From Eutreptiella sp. 'Long Island Sound 2002' (lineage: Eukaryota > Protista > Euglenida): a stretch of DNA of 64,000 nucleotides. The stretch spans positions 2,356,001 to 2,420,000 of the forward strand of contig OZ038379.1 of NCBI GenBank assembly GCA_964036045.1, written 5' to 3'. This document shows positions 10,547-42,052 of the stretch, piece after piece (position 1 is the first letter of the stretch; every line of letters begins with the position of its first letter). The notes below the pieces were generated by a model. The model was not told the origin of the DNA. It made no database searches and was given only the letters and a program-made list of their open reading frames with translations. The position numbers were made by a program, and so were the translations under genes.

Positions 10547-13500
10547 CACCAGACAATAGTGATGTTGCCAGCACCCTCCGCCAAAAGACAATCACAAATC
10601 ACAACACAGCTCCAGGAAAACCCCAGTGCCCCCCAAAATCCCGTAACAGAGCAACACAGCGCTCCAGCCCTCCCTTGGATCTTGGATCCCTTGGCTCTGG
10701 TCTGATTCATTGGCCCTGGTCTTAGTCCGAAACCCTGTCCGGTGTGTGCACCATGCACATGGAAGAGGTATCTATGTGCTGTGCGCCCGCAGGGAGGTGC
10801 TCGCCAAGAGGCGGGAAAGGCAGGCCAGCCTGCCACCCGCCACTGACTGGTGTGCCCTGGTATGACTGGCCCACCCCTGGAGAACGCGCTCCCCCGGTTA
10901 ACCCACACTGGTCTCCCTCCTCCAATTATTCAGCCTCCCTCCTGGCACGCGAGTGACCCGGACCTTCTCTTGCCCTTCTTCGAATCAGGTCCATGTGCTG
11001 TGCAAGGTTCTCATGGGGGGTGGTGTGGGCTGTTGGCTGGCAGGCTAACCCGCTCCTTGACCCCGCATCTGACTCCTTCAGCATTTCTCTGACGCGCCGT
11101 ATTCAGGACTGGCCGAAGTGGTAGTGGACCGTGGGGGCCTGGGGCCTTGGGGACTGGGTCAGTGCGATGGCATAAGCTCATCCATCCCGGCCCTTGTCGG
11201 GGCTGAAGAAGCCAGATCCCCCCTTCACCCCACCATTATCCCCGCACAAGAAGTCCTACACAAGTCTGATACAAACCTCCTTCAGGTTCAACACAACATC
11301 CCTACGAGTCTTATGCGAGTGCTGTGCAAGTCCCACCCTGCCCCTCCCCTTGCCATGGCACAGCCTTGTCTAAACATGGCGATACCTTGCATCGAGGCTG
11401 ATTAAGCAGGTAAGGTGGGGGCGCCTGCAGCGCCTTGAGGGGGGTCCTAATCAAGATGTGTCTGACAGACTGAAGAAGGGGACCTTCACCAGGACATATC
11501 ATGGACTGCAGCGCCTGTCCGGACCAAGCACTGCACTGATGTTTGGGGTGTAATGCCCAGGGTGACGCCCATCATCAGATTAAGCATGGCAACGCCGTTT
11601 GCCCATTGTTGTTCTGTCTGCAATTTGTGTGAGCAAGAATGCAAGACAACAAGTTTCTGAAGTGGTTGTCATGGGATAGGGGGCTGAGACATGCTGTTGA
11701 GGACGGTTTTGCTCATAATTATATTCTTCTTGACACTGCAGGTCTCTTCTATTTGTTTTTGGTGTGACTTTCAGCCAATATTGCTGTTAGCCCCCCCCCC
11801 CCCCTTCCCTTGCCTTGCCCAAGTTCCAGACCAGGAAACATTTGATGTAGTGCTGGTCACGAACTCAAGGCAACATTAAGTATGCGCATGGCAGTTTCCC
11901 ACTGCATAACTTGGGAGCAGAGTCAGCTCATCCTCAGTAAGTGTCAGATCTGCTACCACAATGAGTTGTGGGAGCATCAGACATCTTTCACGTCTTGAGT
12001 CAGGCATGCAGGCAGCAAAAGTCATCCAGATCCTCCAGATGAGGCACAGGCTTGTCAACCCAAAATACTTTGAGGCATGCAAAAAGTAGTGATGCCAGAT
12101 CCACACCAAATGCCAGGGGGAGCGTTGGCGCGCCGGGCGCGCGTCGGGCCTCTGTTTTTGACCATTCCCCACTCGTGCCTGTTGTTGTCCCCACCTCACC
12201 AAACAATTTGGAGTACCTTCTCGCCGAGTCTAAGGGGGAATCCTTGCACCGCGCACTACTTTTAGACGATGTTCCCTCCGAAGAGCCCCCAGGCACACCC
12301 CTTGGAAACGCCCATAGAATTAGCTGACCCAAACTCACCAATCCAGTAGTCCAACACTAGCGACATAACCTCGGTGATATCCAAAATACATCCAGCAGGC
12401 ATTATAAATCTGGACATAAAAGAGCAAACCTCCACGCAAGCATGTTGTGGAAAAATCAGAAGTCAAAACCTCCGCTAGGAGTCACAATGATGCCCCTAGG
12501 TGCCCCCAGTATCTCAAAGTATGGGTCTCTAGTACGGTCAGACGCCCAAAAAGTTGCACTGCGCGTGCACTGCGCTTAAGGCGCCCCCTAAGAATTTGGC
12601 CCATCCTTTGCACCCAGTTTATGACGATGGCAATGGTGGTGGTTGGAAGTGGTGGGAGTGACATTTTGTGTTGTTGAATTCTCATATTTCGGCTTATACA
12701 AGGTGCCTTGCAGAGAAGGTTTGCGGTCTAGTGCGGTCTACTTGGGGGACTTCCCAAGGTGAGGATAAAGTTGGGGCTAGAGATAAGATACTTAATACCG
12801 CGCCGGGCATGCGCCGGGCGCGCGCCGGGCAAACATTCCCCCCCAGTGACCCTCGGTCTGATGCCAACAACTATAACATGGCACCTGCTTGGGGTCTGTT
12901 TTGAAGATGCATGCACTCCTGACGGGTTGTGGGGGGGGGGGGGGTTGAGGCCTTTAGTTGCGAACCTGGCACAAGGTAGGGGGCCCCAACACCTGGGGCT
13001 GCAACACACGGGAATCTTCCCTATGTTGCTGCCTTGTTTGCATGCATTAGTGCTTGTTTGCTTGTTTCTTTGTGTGTCCTTAATTGACCGACGTATGTTA
13101 CATGTATGCATCCATGTGTCACCTGCATGCATCCACACTTACATGTCTGCACATTGTCATACTTAGTTTCCTTACTGTTCATTTATTTGTCTTCCCCTCG
13201 CCACGTCCACCCATGCTGGGTGCCCCAGCTGTGGCAGGTGCGGCAATGAGGCGCCCTCCAGTCAGACAGTGGCGATCCCTGGGGAATGGTCAGAGGTTGT
13301 TGCGCAGGGGCAGGTGTCCTGCTCACAGCCATGCACGTGGAGCCACCGTGCGAGCGCGGGATTGGAACGTGTTGCCAGCCACGGTTCATTGTTTTGTTGC
13401 TGAGTTTGGCACGTCTTTGCCACATCGAATTCAACGACAGAAGACAAAAGGATTGAGGACCACGCTGCCGGGGATTCTGGCATGCATGGCGCACAGCGAC

Positions 13501-24725: not shown

Positions 24726-25670
24726 TCATCGACATCGATGAAGGGGGAGGGGGTGGGGGCAATCAAGGCCACCCAAAAGACCGCTCCGCCCGAGGTCAAG
24801 CCCCCATTCCCAATATTCATGCCTCGCAGTGCCGCCTGCAGGTTCTGCACTCCTTTGATATCGTTCTGCGTCACCCTGGAGTACCGCTTCCGCTGGCAAA
24901 ACAGTGGCCGGCACCACGTCCCCTGCCCCAGCCACACCCGGCAGGATGCGCTCCCGATTGAGCGCCACAATCTTGGCGGTTGGCTCCCGACGGGCGGCCT
25001 CGTACGTCTGCAGCGCACGCGCGACCGCCGCGTGCATTCGCGGGGGGGAGCGCAGGGCCTCAGCGAGCGCCACGCCATCCAGAATGGCCTGGTTGGCCCC
25101 CTGCGACCCGTACGGGAGCATGGGATGCGCGGCGTCCCCCATCAGAGAGACCCGGCCAAAGCTCCAGCGCGCGAGCGGGTCGCGGTCGACGGCTGGGAAC
25201 TGCACGATGGTGCTCTGTATCCTGTCGAGGAGGCCCGGGCAGCTGAGGAAGGGGAACTCCCACGCCTGCAAAGGGGCCAGTTTGGAGGTGGGACACGGGA
25301 CCCCCCAGTCCCTCAGGGCTGCCTCAGGGACACCCTCGAAGGCTTTCTCGAAGACGAAGTTGACTTCGAGTCGGGGAGCGGCGAGGGCACTGATGGGGTA
25401 CGCCTCCACGCGCTGCTCCGGGGTCCCGACCACAACCATCGTGCAGGGGGGCATGACGCAGGTGTCAGGGGCCATGTGCGCGGTGCCACGGTACAGCATC
25501 GTGCCGTGGAACGTGGGCGGGCCCTCACTCGGGAAGAGCTGCGCGCGCACCTGAGACTTGATGCCGTCAGCGCCGATCAGCACGTCCCCCCGGAACACGG
25601 TATGCTCGCCGGTGGCGGTCGCGGCGGCGAACACCAGAACTGCGGCTTCGTCTTGCTCGAAGCCTGTGAC
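24726..25670 (-). CDS. FMO-class A monooxygenase fusion gene, exon 5 (class A hydroxylase C-terminal half)
   Basis: Acceptor ttgcag|GTC, phase 0. DG motif GADGIKS and GD motif GDAAHPMLPYGSQGANQAILDG. Stop TGA at 24726. Confidence 0.9.
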   Translation of the reverse strand, partial: VTGFEQDEAAVLVFAAATATGEHTVFRGDVLIGADGIKSQVRAQLFPSEGPPTFHGTMLYRGTAHMAPDTCVMPPCTMVVVGTPEQRVEAYPISALAAPRLEVNFVFEKAFEGVPEAALRDWGVPCPTSKLAPLQAWEFPFLSCPGLLDRIQSTIVQFPAVDRDPLARWSFGRVSLMGDAAHPMLPYGSQGANQAILDGVALAEALRSPPRMHAAVARALQTYEAARREPTAKIVALNRERILPGVAGAGDVVPATVLPAEAVLQGDAERYQRSAEPAGGTARHEYWEWGLDLGRSGLLGGLDCPHPLPLHRCR

Positions 25671-25799
25671 CTGCAACGACCCCAAAAAAAGACTCACAGC
25701 ACGAAGGGGGAAAGGGGGGGATGAAGCATAAAACTCCAATGTGACACATTTGTTCAATTTTTAAACGGAAGGCAATAATGTTGCCTGGGGCAATTTTGC

Positions 25800-25860
25800 T
25801 GATCAGAATTTCGCCAAAGGAAAATTTCCCACCCTTGAAATCCCCAACGCTCAAAGTGCC
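25800..25860 (-). mobile_element. Remnant of the right end of the pogo-SAM element family, in intron 4
   Basis: AATTTCGCCAAAGGAAAATTTCCCACCCTTGAAATCCCCAA matches the reverse complement of about 62935-62975. Confidence 0.6.
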
Positions 25861-26689
25861 ACATGCCTGCACAGCTGCAATACAACACACAAAATATGCG
25901 CAAGAAAGAGACTCCAAAACTGCGACACATTGCCACAACATGGTCACAGGAGGCAAGGAGTACACTAGGCACAACCAGGCCTCAAGGAGTTAAGTATCTG
26001 GCATGGGGCAGGCGGGGCTAGGGTGGGCGATCTAAGGCCTTCAGCCTCTAAACAACAAGTGAGCAGGGTGGGAACAGATGATACCCCACCCGCCCCATGG
26101 GCAGTAATGCAAAAGGAAAAACACGCCCGCCGCCACCTACCTCTACTCCAAGCGACAAAACTGCGCCCACCCCCCAACGGTCAGTGCAGGGGGCGGGGGC
26201 GGGGGCAACAACCAAGCGACAATCAGACGCCCTCACCCTGTTGCCTCCCCACGGCAGGCAACCTGCCAGACCAATGGAAAGCATCCGCCGCTTCCACACC
26301 AACAGCCACACAGTGGCAGCAGGGCTCCGGTGGCTTCTCAGGGACCCACACCCAAAACTCCCCGGGCGCATGAAGCCCCCATGCAACTCAATGACCCCCT
26401 GATACCACCCCTTACCCTGCCCCAGGGTAAGACTGGACCAGGGCCAACTTCCCGATGGACCTGGTGGCAGGAAGCTCCCACTACACATACTACATACAAT
26501 GCCCGGCTAAGGTCAGACCCCGATTCCTTCCAAGTGGACCTTGCCAAATCAACTACCTCACCCGGTTACCCCCATGCTCAGTCCTCAGGCAGGACACAGG
26601 GTCAGCCGGCTGAAGATGGGGCGGAACCCAAATGAAGCAACACAGGGTGGTGGAACAAGAATAAATTCTACTGCCTTCAGCAAGGCACC

Positions 26690-28160
26690 TCAAAGAGAGA
26701 TGAGAGACGTCGAGGGGAAGTCATACAGACCCATCCTAGAGGCGACAGAAGGGTTTGGGAAAAAATCCACATTTCAAAAAATTTTCAGGTGCCACTACAA
26801 ACCAGCGATTTTTCGGCTTTTCGGCATGCGCCACGCTACACGGGCCTAGTGGCCACTACCTAGGTACCCTTGGGTGCTAAAGTATCTGTTTTGTCACCAA
26901 ATGATCACCCACACCCATCCCAGAGGCGACCAAAGGAGTTCAGAAAACATTGAAACTTCGAAAAATTGGGGGTACCACTACACAGCCTAAAAATTAGTAA
27001 TTTTGGGGCTTGGGTGGTAGATTTCCCGTATTGTCACCAAGTGATCACCCAGACCCATCCGAAAGGCGGCATATAGATTTCAGAAAAAATCCGAAATTCT
27101 ATTGCCTTCGGCAAGGCACCTCGAAGAGAGGCTGACACCCCCCAAAAAGTGGTACCCAAATACCGGGGGGAGGGGGGTAGAGGGCTCAAAATCGAAAAAT
27201 TCGTTGGGGGATATTGTCTCGCAAAATAAAGATTTTATAAGGGCTTAGACATCCAATATCATGCCTTGGGGTATGCTACGCGAACGACCCCCCAAAAAGG
27301 GGGTGTATAGCGTCCACACCTACGCTTGATCTAACAACCTCTCGTCGAGGTGATTTTCCGGTGCCACCAAATAGCCTGCAAGATAGAAATTTCGGGGCTT
27401 TCGGGGCGGACATGGCACGGGCTACATGGGCCTAGCGGCCACTACGTGGGTCCGCACGCGTGCTCAAGTACCCGTATTATCACCAAATGACCACCCAAAC
27501 CCATCCTAGAGGTGACAAAAGTGGTTCTGAAAAAGTCGAAATGTCGAAATTTTTCAGGTGCCACTGAACAGCCTCAAAAACAGCAATTTCGGGGCTTTCG
27601 GGGAGCCCATGGCCAAGGCTACATGGGCCCAGCGGCCACTACATGGGTACCCTTGGGTGCTAGAGTCCCCATATTGTCACCAAATGATCATCCAAACCCA
27701 GCCTAGAGGCAACAAAAGGCTTTCGTACAAGATCAAATTTTCGAAAATTTCAGCCGCTGCATGCCAACCTGGAAACGGTTCAGTCCTCACCGGCAAGGGC
27801 CCAAAAGGGGGGCGACCAGGGTTACCCGGAGTTTGGACCCAGGACCCCCACCATTGAGTAGGGGGTCCATATACAAGCAAAAATTCTTCAGGACCTGGGT
27901 CTGAATCAACACACAATGGTCGCAATACGCAAAAAGTTTTGACCCCACCTCCAAAATCGGTACCCAAGAACAGGGGGGGGGGGAGAGAGGTTAAAATTGA
28001 AAAACTCAATGGGGGGGGCAATTTTGTCTCCCAGGAGGATGATTTTACAAGGGATTAGACATCCGATATCATGCCTTGGGGTATGCTACGTGAATGAACC
28101 CCCCAAAGGGGGGGTGGTATGTCACCCACGCACCTGCGCTTGATCTAACGACCTCTCTTT
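26690..28160. repeat. Nested copies of the 4700-5360 repeat family in intron 4
   Basis: Repeated CACCAAATGATCACCCA.ACCCATCC.AGAGG units and a duplicated CATGCCTTGGGGTATGCTACG block. Confidence 0.6.
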
Positions 28161-29616
28161 GAGGTGACTTGTGTGACACACAATCCACGGTTGCACCCAC
28201 ATTCCCATTGGTGCCCACTCCCCAATCCCAAGTTATCCGAAAAAATGGACAACACCCTCCACCCCAAACAGGCCACCACCTGGATCACATACCACACTCC
28301 CATCGACTCTGCAATGTGCTGGTGGAGCACCCTTTCACACTTCCCCACCACCACAACCCCAACAAGGCCAATTGCCAAGTAGCTTGGGAGAAGACCCCCA
28401 CCGGAAATCCCTCCACCACATCTTGGTGGTCTTGGGTAGCATCGTTGCATGTGACACCAGATGCCCGGAGTAGAGTGCGCACCGGGCCAGCACAGACTGA
28501 GAGAACCAAAGACCACTGAACCCCTCACCTCAGCAAGCTCTCACCCCAAATTCCTGAAGATTGGACGCCAAGCGAGAAGCACATGGCCAAACACCTGCAC
28601 TAGCGACTGCAAGACGCCAACAGGCACACCATCACAATATTGCGGCCCCCAAAGTGTCTATGCCAACAGCCCCACCATCTGGGGCCCGGTACCACCCTGG
28701 GGCTGCAAGGCCCACTGTAGGGATCCCCAGAAACTTTGCAAGGATCAGACCTCAGACTAGGACACTCCACAGCCGCAACCAAGCCAAACAAAGCAGTTTG
28801 GCCAAAGAGGAATCCCTGGAGCAGATCTCCCCAAGACATAAATAAATGCTCGCCACAAGGGTTTTGGCCACTGGCCAGCAGATAGTTTGTTTAGGTGCTT
28901 GTTTTTTTTTTGTTTTTTGCTTCTTCTTTTTTTGGCAGAAAATATGTAAAAAAAAACTGTTTGCATTTCACCACTGTTGTTTCTGTTCTTGTGAATGTGG
29001 CCTTGGGCCACTGGACCAAGTAGACGGGTCCATACATGACACCCCATGTCGAGAACGAGCGGGGAAAGAGAGGACGACCAGCTAAACAGCTTGCAAGGGA
29101 AATGTCATAGGGCAAGAAAGGGAAGACCCATGGCCGGCACACAGACGGGCGCTAGGGCCCGGAAAGGCACAGACCAGCAAGAAGTGGAGCACAACTGACC
29201 GCAGGAGTGGAACCAAGAGAGCCGCCCCCCGCATAGGGCAGAAGCATCCTCGCATTATCACAGGATGCAGCAATCCGGTGCAAGGCTGAAAGGCTGAAAG
29301 GCTGGGTCAAAACTTGCGATTGCTGGGCGACCTATGACAACCCCCAGAGACCCTTGGGCCGGGGTGGGGTGATCATTTGGTGACAACGGGAGTGCATGTA
29401 AACCCATGGGGGGCGGCCATTTTCTTTTGTTGTTGGGGGGGGGCTGTCAAGGAGGAAGGGTTGGGGGTCTGGACCCCCCCCCTCAGCCCCCACCCCACCC
29501 CCACTGGTCTCCAGTTGCTAAAAAGGACTCTGGGCGTCCCCCAATGGCATGGACTGCAATGGCATGGACTGCACCCTCCAGGCCAGTCTTTGCATCAAGG
29601 GCCACAGAATGTGCAC

Positions 29617-29853
29617 CTGCATGCCCACGTGCATCTCAATCTGGCGCGACTGCACTGCCTTGTACAGCAGCTGGAGGAACCTGGCACAGCTGACACTGCA
29701 CTGCGGAACCTTCTGGCCACTTGGCAGCTCCAGGGCACATTGCTTCCTGGAGACCACCTGGCCGCTGTCAGTGGCGAAGACCACCTCCTGAGGTTGGGCA
29801 GCAACGTCCAACAGCTTCTGATGGAGCCCCAGTTGCTGCAGCACTATGAACAC
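29617..29853 (-). CDS. FMO-class A monooxygenase fusion gene, exon 4
   Basis: Acceptor tgctag|GTG and donor CAG|gtgcac; 237 nt, phase 0/0. VFIVLQQLGLHQKLL...PQCSVSCARFLQLLYKAV...HVGMQ joins NIVPK (exon 3) to VTGFEQD (exon 5) as expected for class A hydroxylases. Confidence 0.85.
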
Positions 29854-32415
29854 CTAGCAGAGATCATGAAGATAGGGATGCAGGAGGGGAGCGGAGGGTG
29901 GTTAGGAGGAGAGGAGAAAGCTGGGCACTATAACCAAGAAGAGGGAACAGAGGAAGGATGAAGACAAAGGAAAATCACTTTTCGTCTGGCCTCGGGGATT
30001 GAGGTGTTGAGGCCAGTGGTGTGGAGAGCCTGCATCCCGATCCGAAGCCGAACACAGGAACAAGCAGAAAGTGAGAAAAAACGAGGGACAAGCAGACGAC
30101 AGAGAATGGCCATGTCAGGCAAAGATAAGATGGAGACAATACGCACAGCTCGTGGGAGGGGGCAGTGGAACACCAGCTGGGGGGGTGGTCACTGGCCACC
30201 TGCTCGCAGGTAACAGCCAAGTATTGTCGGCTTCCGGCCAAATCACCTGGCAGAGGGTGTTAAAAATCATGTAGGCACGCAGAAAGGGAAAACGCCACTT
30301 ACCTGCCTTTGAGGTGTATTTGATTGCACTTGCTATCCTTGGCCCTCACTGGTTTACTGCGCTGTACATGTGCCGCCGCATCCGACCACTATTGCTCCGC
30401 AACGCCACCCACTGTAGATGCTACTCTCTGCCACCATGGATGCTGCTCCTAGGCTGGGTGGCAGCAACATTAAACTGCAGTGTTGCAAAAGGGCCACAGG
30501 CAGCCACATGGATCTGCATCTTAGTGCAGTGCCAGGGAGGGTCAGCCAGTCCCCAAATCACCCCCCCCACCCACCCCTCGGGTCACTAAGCTACTGCAAT
30601 TGCATCCCCCCACTTGTCTCTTGCTACACCCAACCTGCTGCTTCCCCCCTCTCCAAGAGAGATGTCCCTAATGAGTATCATTCGTACAAAAAAAATCTGG
30701 ATATTTGGATTCTTAAGGATAGCCCTTGTGGGACTGCACCACAGAGCAGAATCGTTCTCGAACTGCAGCTGCACGGTCGGTGTGGGAGCCCCAAATCCAG
30801 GAATTGGGTGCATGGTGGCACAACGCAACACGACCACAACCCATATGCAACATAACACAGCACATTTCTAGTTCTCATTCATAGTCTTTGTATTCTGAGT
30901 AACCTGGCCAAACATTTACGGCCACAGGGTTACTTGCTTACCTCTAACAAAAAAAATTGACATCATCCTTGATGTTGTGTTGGGCTACAACTCCACATCT
31001 GCAGTCCAGATACATCTAGGATGTAAAAGGGTGTGTTTTGCAGCCTGTAGCCTTGCCTACTACTGGCCACGGCTCGTGAATTCACCAGTTCCACTGAAAA
31101 TGACTAACATGGGTCGGCTGAAAATTGCACTTTTTCTGGTGAGGCCAAAGGGTCCCTGGGGGATCATCAGGTGGTGGCTACACGCCAACCAAGTCTTGGG
31201 CACCACGGCAATTAAGCCCAAACTGATGCTACATCTATACATATGTATATTACTGCACCCCTCTCCTCTTAAATCCCGCCAAAAAGCAAGCAACAAGCAA
31301 GCAAGCAAGCACGTCACATTTCCGTTTTGGCCACCATTCCTTCCCAACGCTTCGGACTATACGGCACTCTCGCCATCCTAGAGCCTAGGTGGTGCTCTTG
31401 CGAAATCCAAGTTTTGAGCCCAAAGCTCAGCAGTGGCGATCCGGGGCAGGGGTGCCCAGTCGGGAGGTGCCCTCCCAAATCAGCGCAATTTGGGGCCCAA
31501 AACAGGCATTTTTTGCCCAAAGCAGCCCTAGAACCTGGTCAAAACGGCCAAATGAAGGGAAACGGTTGCTACATTACATGTGCGACTTGACTTCCTTGTG
31601 TCAAAGAGCCGTTTGGTGCCCTTCACTTGCACAATATGTCCGAGAAACGCCTCAATAGGGGCCCCAAAAGCCCAAAGCCCGCGTAGATCGGCCACAGCCA
31701 GCCCCAAACCATGCACAAGCCATATCTTGGGCTGCATGGCTCAAAATGCAATTCTGAGGGCACCTAATCCACGCGCAATCCCCCCTTTTTGTGGTTTCCA
31801 CCCCTCATAAGCACCCAAACAGACACCTGGACCCCCCGGCGGCAAACTGCAAGCTGAAGCCCAAACAGGTGGGTGCCAACCCGGGTCAATGGGGTCCACT
31901 CGGGGCAGAAAAATGACTTTTTGCACAAATGGTTTCAGACCACCTGGGATGCAAAAACAAGTGGTTTTAGCCCGTTTTAGCCTGTGGTGGCCAGGCTCAT
32001 CAAAGAACATCACCCACACACCAAGCCCGGCCCTCCACAAGGCGTACTTGCCTACAGCATGTTGTTTTATGGCTTGGGAGTGGTGGTTGAGCACGCATCA
32101 GTTGTTGTGCCCAGGAGTTGGACGCAGAAGCTGTGCCTACTACTTCTAGGCCCTCCGTATCAAAGGCCCCGTGCAGTGCCCCGCTGCATCGTATCTTGGA
32201 AGGGAGGGCAAAGGCAAAGGCAGAGTGGCCAGGGGATCTCTGCATCATCGTGCTGTGCTTATTATTCCCTTCCTATTCTGCAAGTGGGCACCCTGACGCC
32301 CAGGACAGCCGAGTGTCAGTGTTTCTCTTGCCCCACCCGAACTGGAGCACTTTGTTAAGCAACCGAGCGATCCAACCACTGAACCTGGTTTCCTGGTAGT
32401 GGAGGCAAGTATGAC

Positions 32416-33014
32416 CTTGGGAACAATGTTCAGCCCTGCACCCACATCATTGCTGGGGGTGTGACTCCGCTCTACGATCACAGGCCGCAGCCCGTGCCTC
32501 TCCAACAGCAGAGCGGCGGCCATGCCTGCAATCCCACCGCCGGCAATGATGACCTTCAGGCGCATGTCCCCTTGCGGGCTGCGGGACACTCTGTACAGCT
32601 GGGTCTCCGCCTCTGCCCGCGACATGCCGTACGTTGTGGCTGTGGCCCCGACCGGCCGGTACCGCTTGGCCCAAGCGAAGGGCAGGAGGGACATCACAAA
32701 GCAGCCAAGCCACAGCACCACCGCCAGCCGCATTAAACGACTTTGCCACAACTCATGGAAGGAGAGCCGCTGCCGCAGCAGCTCCTGCCGGGCCAGCTGC
32801 GGTTGAGCCCCAGGGCCCCGCAGGCGGAACTGGGCGGCAACGAAAGGTCCAAACGCCAGAGCCAGGGCCAGCTGCGGGTCTCGGTAGAGGATGGGAAAAA
32901 TGGGCCCGTGCTAGCGATGTCATTGAGGTACAGGACGTAGTCCACAAGGCCCTTGACGCGGCGGGCCAAGTGGGAACCAAACTGGTACAGATAATGCTGC
33001 TCGTCGATAAGCGC
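32416..33014 (-). CDS. FMO-class A monooxygenase fusion gene, exon 3 (FMO C-terminus, hydrophobic linker, class A Rossmann start); frameshift near 32905
   Basis: Acceptor ctgcag|GCG and donor AAG|gtcata. Reads LVDYVLYLNDIAS, then after the shift PILYRDPQLALALAFGPFVAAQFRLRGPG...LAVVLWLGCFVMSLL...KVIIAGGGIAG...ER...VGAGLNIVPK with no stop from 32910 to 32416. Confidence 0.85.
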
Positions 33015-35093
33015 CTGCAGACAAGGAAACATGGCACCGTCAACAACGGCATGGCAGGGAAGCACAGAGACACCATGGAGCAACAGCGCACAGCACAAGG
33101 GCGGCGGAGAGGGGCAGCGCTGCGAGGGGAAGCCGCAACAGCCACACCCATATACACGGCAAGCTGAGGTGACCCAGCACCGGGGTCCTGCCTGCACTTT
33201 AGACGGGGAGCATGAGGGGGTTGCGATCCTGCAGCCACCGCAGGGGTGTAACAATACCATACACACCACACAACCTCAGGTGGTGCCCATGGACCATGCA
33301 CCACCTTTTTTTTTTAATCCGGCGCATCCTGTGTCCAATCGTGCTCTCAAAATAATCCTGGATCAGAAATCAGTATCGACGGTGTACGAGGACAGCCTCA
33401 CAGGGTTACTGTTTTCCCATAGACCCGGGAGGAAGGCGGCCTTGCTTCCAGTCTACCATGCGTCGCATGCCACTTCTAGGACTGTTCACCCGGGAAAACC
33501 CATGCCTCTTAACTAGGCCCCTGTGCGTGGTGAGCCCTTTCCTTAATTGCGCCCCTTTTCGAAAGGCTTCCTTTGCCCTCTCACTCGGCGTTGAGGCCGT
33601 GCCCAGAATGCTGTGTCCTCATACCGCAGGAAACCTCCTCATGGTCCATCGCGCCCTAATCTCTGCCCGCGCGTGCTCCGCGTGTTGCACGCGCACCGGT
33701 CCCCACACTTCGCCTCAGGAGCCGGGCTAGCGCGCCCCTCAATGCCTTAGTGACATGCATTAGGCGATCTAGCCACCCCACGCGATGGCCCTTCACTCAT
33801 GCAATCGCAGCTAGCAGCCAACAGGTAACAGCCGTGATGGTCTCACCGCCGATGGTAGAGGGGGTGAACAGTCCCCCGCAACTCTCAACGACCATCCCCA
33901 TGGCTCCTCTCCACAACACCTGCTTTTCACCAGGACCGTCCTTAAGGGAAGGGGAAAAAAACAGTCCCCCTACGTTTCATTAAAAAAAACGTCGCACCCA
34001 ATTTGCTTGACGGGGAGGGGGCCATGGGGGTTATCCACAGAGCGATTACAGGGGACTGTGAAAACGGCTGCTGGCGGTTAGAAATACCGTTGGGGCTGAT
34101 GTTGGGGCCTGGGAATGCCTTTGGGGTAGAGTCAGCCACCCCCCCTCAAGTGATTCCCTGCTGCTGCCCCTGGAGCAGCAGTCAACTGAATGGCGCCATG
34201 CCCGTCAAAAACAAGTCAGCTTGTCACGACACCAGTTGGGGGTTTCTGCTGGACGCCACGGACGCCAACTGGAATCTTTGAGCCTCAACTCACCTGCACA
34301 ACAACAGGAGTGTACAGCAACATTCAACCTCGGATTCGAACCCTGCCCTGCTCTTCTACGGTGTTCTCAGCGTCGGCTTCACTCGACGCCGATATTCCGG
34401 GCATGGGGTTCGACCTTGGGGCTTTGGTACACGGAGCCTAAAACTCTATCCGGGTACCAGGAACGTTGCTTTGGCTTTGCCAAGTAGAAGTGCCATTTCC
34501 CACAATTCTTACGGGGTATACTCGGGGAACGCCCTCTGGTCTGTGGAGAGCAGGGCTGCCTTAACCAGTAACCGGCCCCCTGGCCCAGTTACTGGCCAGC
34601 CGGCGCCGCTTAATGGCCAAATTTCGTAAAGCGCCAAGTGTCGTCCTGTAACCGCCAATTGCTGCACCAGCGGTTGCCCACCACTCGCCAAAACGGGGGG
34701 ACTACACCTTCCTTGATGAGAAAAAAGGGAAATCTGGTCCCTCATGGAAATTAAAGATATCGTACGGATTTGCAAATTTGATGCTTCTAATTCGCCATTT
34801 TGCATCACAAATTCGCGATGTTCGGCGTGGCTTCCAACCCCAGCCGCATGTTTGTGGTGGTCACTGTTTCCGTGCGCACTGTGCATGCACCGTGCAGTCC
34901 CCACCATCTGTGCCCGTTCTCCTGTCTCCTGTACCTGTCATGCCTATCTCCCCATGTCCTGCTCTATTCTTCTGCCTGTTGCCGATGCAGATTCCATCTG
35001 CACAGAGCGTGTCGCGCGCGCACACCCTCATACAGCAGGCACTCCCTCACACAGCAGGCACGAGAACACAAGGGAGACGCACGAGGCAGGCAC

Positions 35094-35439
35094 CTGCAGC
35101 CGCATCTCCTCCGGCGAAGGGAGGGGCACGGCTCCGCGCAGCACCTGGACACAGAGCCGCGCCTGCTGCTCTGCAACTGGTGGCAGCGCCCCAAACCCTG
35201 GTCGGCCAAACCCCACGAACATCACGGCGGAGCCGAGGTCGGGGTGGATGCAGTGCTTCCAGAGCTTGCGGACCTCTGTCATGTCGTGCAGGGCGGCCTG
35301 AAGGAGGGGGTCGCCCTCGGGGTCGAAGAAGTTGAAATCCAGCTGAAAGCCGGTGTGCTGAAGAAGAATGTCGGCCTCGATCTGCGAGCCATCCTGTGAC
35401 GGTGGTGCCAGGCCCTATGCTCTGGACATTGGGCTTCAC
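35094..35439 (-). CDS. FMO-class A monooxygenase fusion gene, exon 2; frameshift near 35394
   Basis: Acceptor gatcag|GTG and donor CAG|gtgcct. Reads VKPNVQSIGPGTTVT, then after the shift DGSQIEADILLQHTGF...FVGFGRPGFGALPPVAEQQARL. Confidence 0.85.
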
Positions 35440-37211
35440 CTGATCACAAAAAGGAGGCAGGAGCAGGGAATCGCTTGAAGGGAATCGCTCCGCCCCCAAG
35501 GTTCTGGCCCTGATTCCACCCCGAAGGCATTCCCTACCCCAACACCAGCCCCAACCGCGTTTCGAACCGCCAATAACCGCCTCCCAGCCACTTTCACGGT
35601 CCCCTGTAACCGCTCTGTGGCAGCTCTGGAATTGCCCCCATGCAGGGGGAGGGGGGGATATGGCGCTCACTGTGGGAAGTTTTGCTGCATGCTGCATCCC
35701 ACGGAGGCTGCCAAAAAGCCCTTTGGCAGGGCACAAAGGTGGGAAACGGCCCATTCATATGTCCAGTGTACCGCACTTGTCGGGGTTTGGAGGGGGCCAT
35801 CATCGGTCGCTGTGATCAGCTGCTGGTCTGCAAAAACAGCATTGGGGCTACTCGCTGTACATCAGCGCCGCTGTTGTCTTGTGCTAGCTCATGTCTCGTG
35901 AACGAGGGCCTGTGGGTAAAGCATACCACTTGCTTGCCACTCCACAACCGTATGTCAGGGGGCCTGGGTGAGGTGCATCAAATGGTCAGTAAGCTGAGCT
36001 GGATGTCCGTGCCTTGGTATGAGTTTGGGGAGGGGGGAGTGGACCATAAAAGTCAAGAGTTTGTTGGGGTTGTTCACCACCGCCACCATTTGGCAGCTTC
36101 TGCACCCCTAGGCCTCCACACGCAGCCAGGATCGGCGACGCTTTTTCACCTTCAGTCCTTCAGTCCACTCAGGACCATGCAGCGTAGAGAAGGGTACGTA
36201 TGGGCGATGTGGGTATGAGATTGGCCACTGACCCATGGCCATTGGCGGTTAGATCATGGCGGTTGGCGGTGCTGGTGGTTGCCCAACGCCGGTCAATACA
36301 TCCAGAAAAACGCACTTGTTCAAATTTTGTGGAGGAAACCCTCCGTTGCTGTGCCGACACTGAGCAACACAGCACATGGGTTGCTTGCTGTGCACCGATG
36401 CTCTGGGTCTTTTCCGTGGCACCAGGCCGAAAACAAAGGGCTGTGGGGGCACTGAATAGTCCAGTGAGCACGTGTGATGACCTGGTAGGGGCACAGCCGG
36501 AGTCGTGATTCACTGATCCCTTGCGCCACCCTCCCCGCAACACATTTCCCCCCACTCTTGCCACTGTGTCGGAGTCACACCAAATTCTGAGCACTGGACC
36601 ATATGTGATACATCTGTTCTGAAGTAGGCCCCAGGAAATGATGCAATTGTGTTGTGGACCAAACAGTTTATAGATGTATGGGGGGTGTAATAATGTAACA
36701 ATCACCTCAGAAACAAGGTGCTGTGGTGGGTGAAAGTTCGCCGTTTTTCGGAATGGGCGATACCAGCCATTCGGCCTGGCAAGGAAGACCCTGCACTCCG
36801 GACACATAGGGAGCACCCTGTGGTCTAATCTACCGGTGGGCTCATTGTACCACCGCCTAACGCACCAGTCCCCTGTGGATTATGGTCTTGCGCCCCCCCC
36901 CCCCCCCGTTTCGCACAGCCCCTCATTGCCGTCTGTCCACTGCAGTCTAATGGAGTGATCTGACGTAGTCGCCCGGTAGAGCGTGTGAAGTCCCTGAGAC
37001 AGCTGGCAGTTAGATCATGGCGGTGGGTGGTACTTGTGTTTGCCGAACGCTGGTGAGCGAAATCTGGTGCGTAAACCCCGGCGGTTGGGAATGAACCGAA
37101 AACGGGCGGCCGATAACCGCCAGCGATTGGCCGGGACCCGCCGGCCGAAGAGCGAAAGAGAACCTCCTTATGGAGAGCCCTGGTGTTGCAATGGGGTTGC
37201 GCAGACCGGAC

Positions 37212-38114
37212 CTGGGCCCCGTGCTGCTCAACGGCGACGAGGAACGAGTTGCACTTGGTCCCAAAGGCCCCGAACACCCCCAGACTGGCCCCCGCCGCCT
37301 TCGTGTGCTCGAGGACCGAGAGATTGTACTCCCCCATGCGGCGGAGCACGGGGTCACCGGAGCGAGAGTCCATCGTGGCCATGATCTTGGACAGCCACGG
37401 CCCCGCCGCGCGCGACATGCCCCACAGCACCCGGCCCGTTATCAGATCCGTATGCAGCGGGGGTCGATCCGGGCGCTCCCGCAGCCGGGGCACCACCCAT
37501 CCCGACCGGCTCCGGATTGACAGGTGAGTCTGCGCCGCCACCTTTGCGATCTCCAGTGCGATGTCGGACCCGCTTTCGCCCATCCCCTGCAGTACCACCC
37601 GCTGGCCGCTGAAAGCCCTGGCGGTGCGGTAGTCGGCGGTGTGCATGACGCGGCCGGTGTAGCGGTCCTGCCCGGGAACGGGAGCGGAAACGGGTCGGGC
37701 ATGCGTCCCGCAGCAGATAAACAGATTGGAAACCGTCCATGCCTCGTCGCCCCGAGCTCCACTGGTCCGGATGGTCCAGCCACCGCCTCCCTCCCGGTGC
37801 GTGCGCTTGACCTCCAAAACGCTGGTATTGAGACGGATGTTGCGCCGGATGCCGAAGTGATCCACGTATTCCTCCAAATACTGCAGATACTCAGCCTTGG
37901 TCCAGAACGTAACCGGCGATTTGCTGGGGAAATCCGAAAAAGTGGTATGGGCCGAGGAGCTCGTCATCTGCAGAGTGTCCCACGCCCACAGGAACACGCC
38001 CCCGACTCGGGCCTGGCGTTCGAAGCAGATCGGGTCATAGCCCGCCTGCTTCAGTTCCTTGCACACCACCAGTCCGGAAGGGCCAGCCCCAATAACGGCC
38101 ACGAGCTCTGGCAT
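37212..38114 (-). CDS. FMO-class A monooxygenase fusion gene, exon 1 (class B flavin monooxygenase, FMO-like)
   Basis: First in-frame ATG at 38114. FAD motif GAGPSG, FMO fingerprint YTGRVMHTADY and NADPH motif GMGESG. Donor CAG|gtccgg, phase 0. Confidence 0.9.
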
Positions 38115-38216
38115 TGGGACAACGGCCGCAGCTGCGACAAGAAGGACAGGACGGAGCACGTGCCACAATGCCAAACTCCAAAAGCGCGGTCCGATGGGGT
38201 CACCACCGTTCGGACC

Positions 38217-38728
38217 GCTATTGGGGACGAGAGGACCGGGACTTTACTAAAAAAAAAATAGGAATTGTTTGCCCATAACATTTGCTACGCCAACTGCCGG
38301 CGGTTGACCACCGACGAACGCCATGTGACCGCCGAACCATGCCAAAACCGCCGGCGGTGAACTGCCATCCGCCAAACCGGTGTGTTGACTGTCCTTCACT
38401 GAAAAACAAAAAAGAAAAAACAAAAGAGTGCCCCCTAGTGTACTTGTGTTGCTCTGCCTCATGCGTGTGCGGCTGTTGTTGAACCAACACGGTCACATAG
38501 CACAATGCCAAAGCACGCGGTCCGACGGGGTCCTCGTCATAAGACAAGCGGGTTGTTGGTCGTCGGTCGTCGCCTCCGCAGGAGAGAGGGGAAGGCGGCT
38601 TTTCAATGTAGGGGAGTGTGTCAATAGAGCCACCCAACCGGACCCCCGCTCAATTGACGGGGCCCACAAAATCCAACCCGGACCAACCTCTGGGCCTTAA
38701 ACCTTCATCAGCCAATCTCGTGCCCAAA
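38217..38728. repeat. Direct repeat A, copy 1 (about 512 bp)
   Basis: Essentially identical to 39690-40200; the ORF track shows identical peptides in both. Confidence 0.9.
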
Positions 38729-39689
38729 GGGGGTGCCCACAGTCGCAAGCGGTCGCAGGCGGTCGCAGGCGGTCGCAGGCGGTCGCAAGCGCTTGAGATG
38801 CCCTTTTTTGGCCAGAAACCCCCTTTTGAGGGCTCCATGCAGTAGTACTGCGGCTTGTGACCCGTCTACGCACATATTTTCTTGTGCTCTTTGCCATGAA
38901 AGTAGTTTTCACCAAAATTTTATTTCAACCGAAAAAAACGGTTTTGTACCCGAAAGTAACAATTGCACAGGCAAATGACGTCATGGCTATGAAAAAAAGT
39001 GACGATGGGGTCTAAAGGACCAAATTTTGCTGCCGTGGCAAATCGGTTCCTATTCCCATTATTGATGTTTGTCGTCGTGCACGTAAGGCCCAAAAAGTAC
39101 TTCGTGACCTTCATGCAAAAGCTTGGCGCAAAAATGGGTATCCCCCGGTGGCGTCACAATTTGATGTGCCACCGATGGTTGCCTGCGTCTTGCGTTCTTT
39201 TCATAGCCATCGTCTAGCACCCGAGGAAGAGGGGTACAATGACCACTAGGCCGTCTCAAGGTCGCCGGCGTTGCAAGGCATCTTAAATGTTCGAAAAGAT
39301 AGGAATGAGCGCACGCGCAATGCCCTACAAAAGGCGGACAAACAAAAGGGGCAAGCGACAGATCCAATGGAAGCTAACAATTAAAGGTGCGTGTTCATTG
39401 TGCCAAGTGGCAAAAGGCCAAGGCTCCTTGCATCCAACCGCTTGAGTTGACAATGAGGCAGGCAACAAGCCATTGGCAATGCTACTATTTAGTGCAAGAG
39501 ACAATTGTGATATGTCTTTCCTTCAATGGGTTAATGCATTGCACACTTGGAGGGACGGAGGGAGGGAGGCAGGGCGGGTTGGAGGGATTGGGGGAGTGAG
39601 TGTATGGGTTATGCCATCTGTAGACGTGTACGAAAATTTTCTTAAGCGGTCGCAGGCAGTCGCAGGCGGTCGCAGGCGGTGGGCACCCC
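38729..39689. mobile_element. Probable non-autonomous TIR element with (GGTCGCAGGC)n subterminal arrays
   Basis: GGGGTGCCCAC / GTGGGCACCCC inverted ends and 10-bp tandem repeats at about 38742-38790 and 39645-39680. No short TSD. Confidence 0.55.
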
Positions 39690-40200
39690 GCTATTGGGGA
39701 CGAGAGGACCGGGACTTTACTAAAAAAAAATAGGAATTGTTTGCCCATAACATTTGCTACGCCAACTGCCGGCGGTTGACCACCGACGAACGCCATGTGA
39801 CCGCCGAACCATGCCAAAACCGCCGGCGGTGAACTGCCATCCGCCAAACCGGTGTGTTGACTGTCCTTCACTGAAAAACAAAAAAGAAAAAACAAAAGAG
39901 TGCCCCCTAGTGTACTTGTGTTGCTCTGCCTCATGCGTGTGCGGCTGTTGTTGAACCAACACGGTCACATAGCACAATGCCAAAGCACGCGGTCCGACGG
40001 GGTCCTCGTCATAAGACAAGCGGGTTGTTGGTCGTCGGTCGTCGCCTCCGCAGGAGAGAGGGGAAGGCGGCTTTTCAATGTAGGGGAGTGTGTCAATAGA
40101 GCCACCCAACCGGACCCCCGCTCAATTGACGGGGCCCACAAAATCCAACCCGGACCAACCTCTGGGCCTTAAACCTTCATCAGCCAATCTCGTGCCCAAA
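39690..40200. repeat. Direct repeat A, copy 2; supplies the stop codon of the upstream hydroxylase gene
   Basis: Identical to copy 1. TAA at 40169-40171 lies within it. Confidence 0.9.
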
Positions 40201-42052
40201 GCAACCCAAACCCCATAGGCCCAAGGTAAATTTCTTCATGTATCAAGAACTTGACCTTCTCCGGAATGTCCAATTCGTACTGGCGCGTAAGGACATTGTT
40301 GTTGCGCTTTCCGGCAGCAATTAAGTTGAAAATTGGTTCTTTCTTCCCCGCCTTCCGCCTCTCCTCCAGCAACTGGCCTATGCCGATCTTATGTTCCACC
40401 AACTTCGATTTCACGAGTTCCTCTTGACAAACGACTGTTGTGGTGCAAGTGGCAAGGCAAGGGCCGTCGGTGGATTGAACGTGCAATGTTACTGCACGAT
40501 CCACGAATGTCCGATGTTCTGTATGTTTGTCCGCTAGTAACCCAGGCTGAGGAGTGGCCCTTGTGGTTGTCATCACAGGCCTGACGACGACACTTGTGTT
40601 AGTGAAAGCAGACATGGTGCGTTGAAGTGTCCCGTTTGCACCCAATAAGACTCTTTCAATCGGGGAGAAGTTTGCAAGCAGTTGGTTGTTGCTCCAAGGG
40701 ACTCTAGTTGCAAGACCCCCGCTATTTGAGTCAACCTGTTGAGACTTGCAAGAAGTGAGCGGAGGAGAACCAGCTTGGCACTTTGACAATGCTTCGAGAA
40801 GACCTTTACGATAGCTAATGGGAATGAGAACTTTCGTTGGAACTTCCTTTTGAACTTGGTCCATAACTTTCTCTGGTAACATCTTCCGGCAAGCAAGTTG
40901 CACCGAAGTGGCCACAGGGCGGCGGTTTCTTTCGTATTCGTTTAAGGCCATGGCAACATTGCTCAATCCGTTGGTACCAGGTGCATTCTTCGTGTTACGT
41001 GAAAAAGACGATGCAAGTTCCACAGCATCAAGCAAGGCCGTAGATGCTCCATTGGAACCCACTGGATACATTGGATGGGCAGCATCACCCAAAAGTACGA
41101 CTCTCCCGTCACACCACGAATCCAGTGGGTTTTTGTCAGACATTGGAAACGCGCGAATGGAGACCGCATTGCAAAGCAATTTTCGATGGTCAAGAAAGGG
41201 CAACCGGAAGCCTCCATTCGCCTTCTCCAGCTCCTCAGCAATTTCCTCGGCAGCCAGTGTTTTTTTGTGGTGGAAGTCAAGGTGGTCTTGGATTGAATGA
41301 TCCTCGGCGAGTTCAACCATAAAGTTCAACGCCTGCTTTTGACATTGGGTCGCTGCCGTTGGTTTCTTGAGAGGGTAGCAAACTAGCTTTCCTTTCGAGT
41401 TTCCGGCCACAACTATTGTTTGTCCGTCGAGAACTTTGTCGACAATGGCTGTGCCGCGATATAGAGTAATTCCACAGGTGATTTGGCCCGTGTCGCTCTT
41501 TCCTTTCGCTCGAAGCACAGCTTTGCGGATTCTAGAAGAAATACCGTCAGCTCCAATAACGACTTCGGAATGCATATCAAATTGTCTCCCATCGGCATGC
41601 TTGCATCGAAGACAAACGCTTTGTTCGGTTTGAGAATACGCCACCCCTTGTACACCGCGTTGTATGGTGCCAGGTCCGAGTCTGTCTTCGACAGCTCGTT
41701 CGAGAATTTCATGTAGCACTGCACGGTGAATCGATATCTGTGGGAATCCTGTTGCGTCGGCAGCTAGCCCTCTTGGCGACTTTGCAATGAGACGTCCGTC
41801 GCTGGTATAGTATTGTTGCTTTGTAGGCGCCCACCCATTTGCAACAACCTCTTCCATCAAGCCAATCTCGTTTAGCGCCCAAAGGGCATGGGGTTGCAAA
41901 TTAAGGCCGGCTCCGCGCCCCGCAAAGCCCACCGTCGAATGCTCTAGAATATCTATGTTTAGTTCCTAGAAGGGTAAACTACGCTTGTTTGCGTGGAGAG
42001 CGAGGGCGGTCGCGAGGCCTCCAATTCCTCCGCCAATGATGCATATCCTCAT
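40169..42052 (-). CDS. Class A FAD-dependent aromatic hydroxylase fused to a C-terminal chorismate-lyase-like domain; in-frame TAG at codon 29 (41966-41968)
   Basis: ATG at 42052: MRICIIGGGIGGLATALALHANKRSLPF*ELNIDILEH...GAGLNLQPHA. Motifs PQISIHRA, GADGISS and GDAAHPMYPVGSNGAS. C-terminal FSPIERVLLGANGTLQR...IGIGQLL...P.FNL...LTRQYEL...IHEEI. No introns. Confidence 0.8.

Follow-up and report, generated by a model that had tools for sequence, protein, structure and literature searches.

An end-to-start join of a class B FMO gene and a class A FAD hydroxylase gene in Eutreptiella sp., with two frame breaks in the FMO half

The closest described systems to the locus considered here belong to two classes of flavoprotein monooxygenases. 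Tail-anchored eukaryotic FMOs, which are class B enzymes, carry a C-terminal FRLRGPG motif, a hydrophobic anchor and an RPxG tail, and then end at a stop codon. PhzS of Pseudomonas aeruginosa and the bacterial 'flavin-dependent oxidoreductase' family are class A enzymes typified by the motifs GxGxxG, GADG and GDAAHP; NicC, vanillate 1-hydroxylase and salicylate hydroxylase, i.e., decarboxylative class A hydroxylases, are more distant kin. A literature search yielded no description of a natural class B–class A fusion. In Eutreptiella sp. 'Long Island Sound 2002' (GCA_964036045.1, contig OZ038379.1), a window of 64,000 nucleotides (positions 2,356,001 to 2,420,000 of the contig; the coordinates given below are those of the window) contains a five-exon locus on the minus strand, from an ATG at 38114 to the end of a stop codon at 24726, in which members of these two classes are joined. 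The FMO half shares the C-terminal motif, anchor and tail with the tail-anchored FMOs; its tail, however, continues into a second enzyme, and the frame of the domain is broken twice. The class A half has the three motifs of the PhzS family, but the copy at this locus is eukaryotic, contains two introns, and has an FMO tail and anchor in front of it.

Judged from the DNA, the locus is on balance probably a recently inactivated fusion gene, i.e., a young pseudogene. A eukaryote-type, tail-anchored class B FMO gene would have been joined to a PhzS-like class A FAD hydroxylase gene of bacterial type, and two small frame-breaking deletions would later have hit the FMO half. The canonically spliced mRNA would then encode 316 FMO residues and 131 out-of-frame residues before translation ends prematurely in exon 3, about 500 nt ahead of the next exon junction. 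In most eukaryotes, a premature stop well upstream of an exon junction marks the transcript for decay. Because of the two frame breaks and the in-frame stops, the double enzyme of 1010 residues cannot be translated from the DNA as it stands, and in this sense the two-domain enzyme is not encoded. That the gene is dead instead of rescued is the most likely reading, and we infer in the same way that the breaks are deletions and that they are recent.

The junction between the two enzymes

The join lies within a single open reading frame (ORF; 32416–32910, minus strand) of 165 codons without a stop, which leads from the FMO C-terminus through the anchor LAVVLWLGCFVMSLLPFAW and the KRYRPVG tail to the Rossmann start of the class A domain. 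This ORF matches both Pfam families, with 31.9 bits for FMO-like (positions 448–518 of 532) and 28.5 bits for the class A N-terminus (FAD_binding_3, positions 2–40 of 349). The hydrophobic segment comprises 19 residues with a mean Kyte-Doolittle value of 2.14, and is followed by a tail of 30 residues, beginning with KRYRPVG, and by the class A start M-R-L-K-V-I-I-A-G-G-G-I-A-G. The complete FMO tail abuts the start methionine of the class A domain, with neither a stop nor a spacer between them. A preliminary description, made from the letters of the window, had held that the FMO C-terminal motif runs without a stop through a hydrophobic segment into KVIIAGGGIAG within one exon, and that the junction does not depend on the splicing model; the open frame 32910–32416 and the presence of both families in this single ORF bear out both statements. 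The end-to-start join of a class B FMO and a class A hydroxylase exists in the DNA.

The zero spacing between the FMO tail and the class A start favours a true fusion event over two neighbouring genes. Alternatively, a functional fusion may never have existed: a bacterial-type class A gene would have landed, or would have been left by a deletion, behind the FMO tail, and the stop-free bridge of 30 codons would be due to chance. The class A part does keep its own start methionine in the typical place (M-R-L-K, ahead of the first beta strand), and the closest genes related to it are without exception stand-alone and of bacterial type. For a frame that matches (1 in 3) and stays free of stops over about 30 codons at the given GC content, the chance is estimated at about 0.1. 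However, zero spacing in a locus with kb-sized introns leaves no space for a 3' end and a promoter, and the class A part has gained two spliceosomal introns, which argues that it is a long resident and presumably expressed, with only the FMO exons upstream of it. An origin of this kind is improbable.

Exons, frame breaks and the state of the gene

The gene model is based on the ORF listing and on three-frame translations of the minus strand. Exon 1 (37212–38114) starts with the ATG and encodes the N-terminal part of the FMO in 301 codons (donor CAG/GTCCGG). It scores 113 bits against Pfam FMO-like PF00743 (cut-off 22) and contains the FAD motif GAGPSG, the sequence YTGRVMHTADY, which is of the FMO-identifying motif type, and the NADPH motif GMGESG, all aligned with the corresponding motifs of the homologues. 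Exon 2 (35094–35439; 346 nt, 3n+1) encodes the middle part of the FMO. Exon 3 (32416–33014; 599 nt, 3n+2; donor AAG/GTCATA) leads from the end of the FMO to the start of the class A domain; in order, it includes the FMO segment ALIDEQHY...LNDIAS, the second frame break, the FMO C-terminal motif, the anchor, the 30-residue tail and the class A start MRLKVIIAGGGIAG. Exon 4 (29617–29853) adds 79 codons of the class A domain and is in phase 0 at both ends, while exon 5 (24726–25670; 314 codons and the stop) encodes the C-terminal part with GADG and GDAAHP. FMO-like matches are found in exon 1, exon 2 and the first part of exon 3, and FAD_binding_3 matches at the end of exon 3 and in exon 5. All four introns are GT..AG, with sizes from 1.8 to 3.9 kb, in agreement with the five exons and GT-AG borders of the preliminary description. 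Its further statement that all exons are in phase 0 fails at exons 2 and 3, whose lengths (346 and 599 nt) add up to 945 nt, a multiple of 3, though neither exon alone is in phase 0. Likewise, the predicted length of about 1010 residues holds as the sum of the exons (3030 nt, about 1010 codons), but no single reading frame crosses them.

For alignment of the FMO half, an X was placed at each of the two breaks. Aligned in this manner, it matches the 574-residue FMO from Tetraselmis sp. GSL018 (UniRef A0A061RF39) end to end, with 45% identity over 561 residues. This protein, the nearest full-length relative, agrees with the FMO half in the order of its domains and in its FAD, FMO-identifying and NADPH motifs. 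Among solved structures, ancestral mammalian FMO5 and FMO2 (PDB: 6SEK and 6SEM) come closest. The anchor and the RPxG tail align with those of FMO relatives, among them a second FMO homologue found on another ENA assembly contig (L003), and the FMO half falls by these features in the tail-anchored subgroup. The nearest FMO relatives terminate 17–45 residues past the anchor.

In an alignment with 26 relatives, the FMO half lacks one residue at the first break and four to five at the second. The first 15 codons of exon 2 (VKPNVQSIGPGTTVT) are in frame with exon 1. Past break 1 (35394–35397, minus strand), where the homologues have one additional residue (F), the FMO homology is one base out of frame (QDGSQIEADILLQHTGF..., continuing as QDGSQIEADILL), which fits a deletion of 3n+2 bases. 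Past LNDIAS, near 32913–32910, it moves back as HGPIFPILYRDPQLA; at this second break (32910–32913, minus strand) the homologues have about four to five additional residues (..IIGC..), which fits a deletion of 3n+1 bases. Both breaks are probably small deletions, as suggested by these alignments. Micro-introns or micro-exons at the breaks were considered and ruled out, on the ground that no DNA separates the homologous flanks. The locus is of value mainly as a warning that exon lengths summing to a multiple of three can mask compensating frame breaks.

The consequence for the spliced mRNA is that the FMO domain has no uninterrupted frame and that no ORF connects its first start with its last stop. 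Read in the frame of the ATG, the mRNA has a TGA (32922–32920) and a TAG (32913–32911) just before break 2, and the stop-free runs comprise 447 and 558 codons. The 447-codon run contains 316 true FMO residues and 131 out-of-frame residues. Beyond the TGA and TAG, an internal ATG at 32733 opens an ORF of 499 codons, which takes in anchor, tail and the entire class A domain. Translated in one frame from its acceptor, exon 3 (33014–32416) has six stops. A reading of the whole mRNA in the outer frame is ruled out by the TGA and TAG in exon 3 and by the composition of the middle segment. It had been proposed that the exons reassemble into one spliced reading frame and encode a membrane-anchored two-step oxidation enzyme of about 1010 residues. 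Neither proposal holds for the sequence as it stands: the FMO homology switches frame twice, with TGA and TAG in frame, and the first ORF ends after 447 codons. The two-step enzyme is further disfavoured by topology, for two NAD(P)H-dependent domains joined by a single membrane span would be expected to lie on opposite sides of the membrane.

The public sequencing runs that contain this stretch are DNA-like only, with introns and exons present alike. Contigs from four of them, designated X1 to X4, X4 being the second sample, were compared with the window over 32300–38200. The 9-kb contigs of X1 (depth 51; this run is perhaps the source data of the assembly) and X2 (depth 12) span the whole interval with no substitution, and those of X4 (depth about 30) extend over both break sites and show no differences. 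Break 1 is unchanged in the contigs of X1, X2 and X4, and break 2 in those of X1, X2, X3 and X4. Moreover, a contig in ENA made with another assembler (49x) has 20,972 bases identical to the window, both break sites included. An assembly error is ruled out as the source of the breaks, given the base-for-base agreement among the contigs of the four runs, which come from two samples, and a second assembly. The sole difference across the 5.9 kb is an extra C in an intronic C-run at 36892 (intron 1) in the X1 and X2 contigs. At 35452–35648 in the same intron (core about 35535–35572), the summed contig depth is 1040, 452 and 4698 in X1, X2 and X4, respectively, in comparison with about 51, 12 and 30 beside it; many short contigs are piled up there, which indicates a short high-copy repeat. 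In three small RNA runs of the species (2013), none of the sampled sequence words was present.

Composition bears on the age of the breaks. In the frame of the homology, the out-of-frame middle segment (405 nt) has G+C fractions at the three codon positions (GC1/2/3) of 0.74/0.35/0.80 and no stop. The other exons have a GC3 of 0.77–0.81, whereas the GC3 of the middle segment in the mRNA frame is 0.35. The coding composition and the absence of stops in the homology frame point to a middle segment that evolved as coding sequence in a frame now unreadable, and hence to recent breaks. Of the 67 FMO columns conserved in at least 90% of the relatives, 61 are kept, and this number is in the range spanned by the relatives themselves. 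The breaks are probably recent, as suggested by the composition and these columns.

A second possibility is that the full-length two-domain enzyme is still made, either from an intact allele absent from the assemblies or by means of two extra splice events, for example an acceptor at 35393 together with a short GT..AG removal in exon 3 (32958–32911 or 32946–32872). In-frame splice solutions of this kind exist on paper; the two breaks offset one another, the remainder of the frame is open and coding in composition, and the cofactor motifs of both halves are kept. However, two unsupported events would be needed, and the extra introns would measure 35–86 nt in a gene whose introns measure 1.8–3.9 kb. 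The strong pyrimidine-rich acceptor is at 35440 and not at 35394, and the rescued protein would be without about 15 and about 20 conserved FMO residues at the two sites. No second allele was found as an insertion at either site in the four runs, and the topology of a single span stands against this enzyme as well. Continued production of the full-length protein is thus quite doubtful.

Several points nevertheless weigh against a disabled gene. The compensation between the breaks (exons 2 and 3 together, 945 nt) and the openness of both halves apart from the breaks could fit a gene that continues to be used. No lesion is present in the 443 codons of the class A half, although with two lesions in 568 codons the chance of this is about 0.2. 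The run contigs compared here are Logan contigs, which drop minor variants, so that a second, intact allele is possible in a diploid, and the two samples are perhaps from the same strain or individual. Finally, alternative splicing, an internal promoter or nonsense-mediated decay may operate at the level of the transcript.

The class A half and its possible use alone

Exon 5 scores 72 bits against FAD_binding_3 (PF01494; cut-off 22). Three exons, all in phase 0, encode the complete class A half; GGGIAG, GADG and GDAAHP are present and aligned in it, and its GC3 is 0.77–0.78. The best relatives are stand-alone proteins of 414–435 residues with 38–44% identity; end-to-end alignments with members of this size give 38–40% over 374–406 residues. 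Those with names are proteobacterial (e.g., Ferrovibrio) or are labelled PhzS-like by JGI. The best solved match is PhzS (PDB: 2RGJ and 3C96; E value 2.5e-36), followed by other decarboxylative hydroxylases. Based on these similarities, the class A half is predicted to be a PhzS-like FAD hydroxylase of bacterial type, and NAD(P)H-dependent (decarboxylative) hydroxylation of an aromatic substrate would be its activity. Of the 92 columns conserved in at least 90% of the class A family, 73 are kept and 19 are changed, while among 55 relatives the maximum is 17 changes and the median is 3. The changes include an HRGR-type motif that reads SCAR and a gap of about 12 residues near the C-terminal helices. 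A divergent eukaryotic branch or a relaxation of constraint may lie behind this outlier status.

It is conceivable that the downstream half works alone, although we consider this unlikely. Translation from the ATG at 32733, on a transcript whose 5' end lies in intron 2 or exon 3, would yield a protein of 499 residues, and the former tail anchor of the FMO (MRLAVVLWLGCFVMSLLPFAW, then KRYR) would act as an N-terminal, P450-like signal anchor of a cytosolic PhzS-like hydroxylase, with the FMO exons as a decaying relic. The intact ORF of 499 codons does open with a hydrophobic segment whose C-terminal side is the more positively charged. The completeness of the class A part over three exons with canonical borders and all three motifs, its end-to-end alignment with the bacterial-type enzymes of 414–435 residues and with PhzS (2RGJ and 3C96), and its GC3 are also in keeping with such a use. 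Against it, there is no sign of an internal promoter or transcript, the 19 changed columns among the 92 are perhaps due to relaxed constraint, and an intact class A half is, at the chance given above, not unlikely even in a gene that is no longer used.

Distribution of the fusion and neighbouring genes

The preliminary description had not recognised the architecture from described proteins, and the same holds after wider searches among relatives, representative proteins and the literature. The junction ORF was compared by HMMER, with no length filter, to 1.84 billion representative proteins; FMO C-termini and class A N-termini were matched separately, and in no case was an FMO C-terminus continued by a class A start. 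A search of the ESM Atlas for fused relatives gave nothing useful. A metagenome scan provided six loci with the FMO C-terminal motif, none of which has a class A domain within 4 kb. In two bacterial class A relatives, the neighbours encode a tannase or a MarR regulator and no FMO, so that an origin from a bacterial FMO-hydroxylase operon has no support. In all the homologues covered, i.e., the Tetraselmis transcript, the L003 gene, the six metagenome loci and the bacterial-type enzymes, the two halves are separate genes. As far as these homologues go, this speaks against the preliminary description, which had named separate homologues as one ground for its refutation. Within reach of these searches, the fusion is unique to this genome and lineage-specific.

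The FMO homologue on L003 (10001–11741; contig coverage 6x) is a stand-alone, nearly intronless gene with 48% identity, and it ends in TAA, followed by AT-rich sequence. A frame change near 10830–10930, possibly a low-coverage error, divides it into two ORFs, and exons of an ammonium transporter lie upstream of the gene.

If the join of FMO, anchor and PhzS-like domain functions in this lineage as a two-flavin membrane enzyme, or did so until very recently, other strains or sister species would have intact alleles or orthologues. It would be the first natural class B–class A flavoprotein monooxygenase fusion, with two successive oxygenations on one membrane-bound polypeptide, and its new architecture would be of interest for pathway channelling and biocatalysis. 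We hold this to be a rather unlikely outcome; the evidence points instead to a one-off fusion, frame-broken in the sole genome carrying it. On that view, the locus would illustrate on a modest scale how a fused gene decays, or how a membrane anchor is captured by an enzyme encoded downstream of it.

The frame upstream of the ATG at 38114 is open for 20 codons (38115–38174, minus strand) and includes a hydrophobic stretch (..LRPVLLVAAAAVVP); there may be an upstream exon or a longer N-terminus. A relic of the dinoflagellate spliced leader was sought in the window, and none was found.

Another class A gene (40169–41932, minus strand) is located 2 kb upstream as a single intact ORF of 587 codons. 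FAD_binding_3 covers its residues 12–344, and about 240 residues without a Pfam match follow, so that it is likewise a class A hydroxylase, with a long C-terminal extension and on the same strand. The first Rossmann strand is missing from this ORF, and it is likely that the gene has an upstream exon. Identity to the class A half of the fusion is 30%, which rules out a recent tandem duplication; in contrast to the fusion, the neighbour is intact in a single ORF. A shared pathway of the two loci is possible.

A direct repeat of 515 nt, with 99.8% identity between its copies, is present at 38215–38729 and 39688–40201 (spacing 1473 nt). One copy is found upstream of the FMO start codon, at a distance of 100 nt; the other overlaps the neighbouring class A gene at its 3' end, last codons included. 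Either a partial tandem duplication or a repeat element could account for it.

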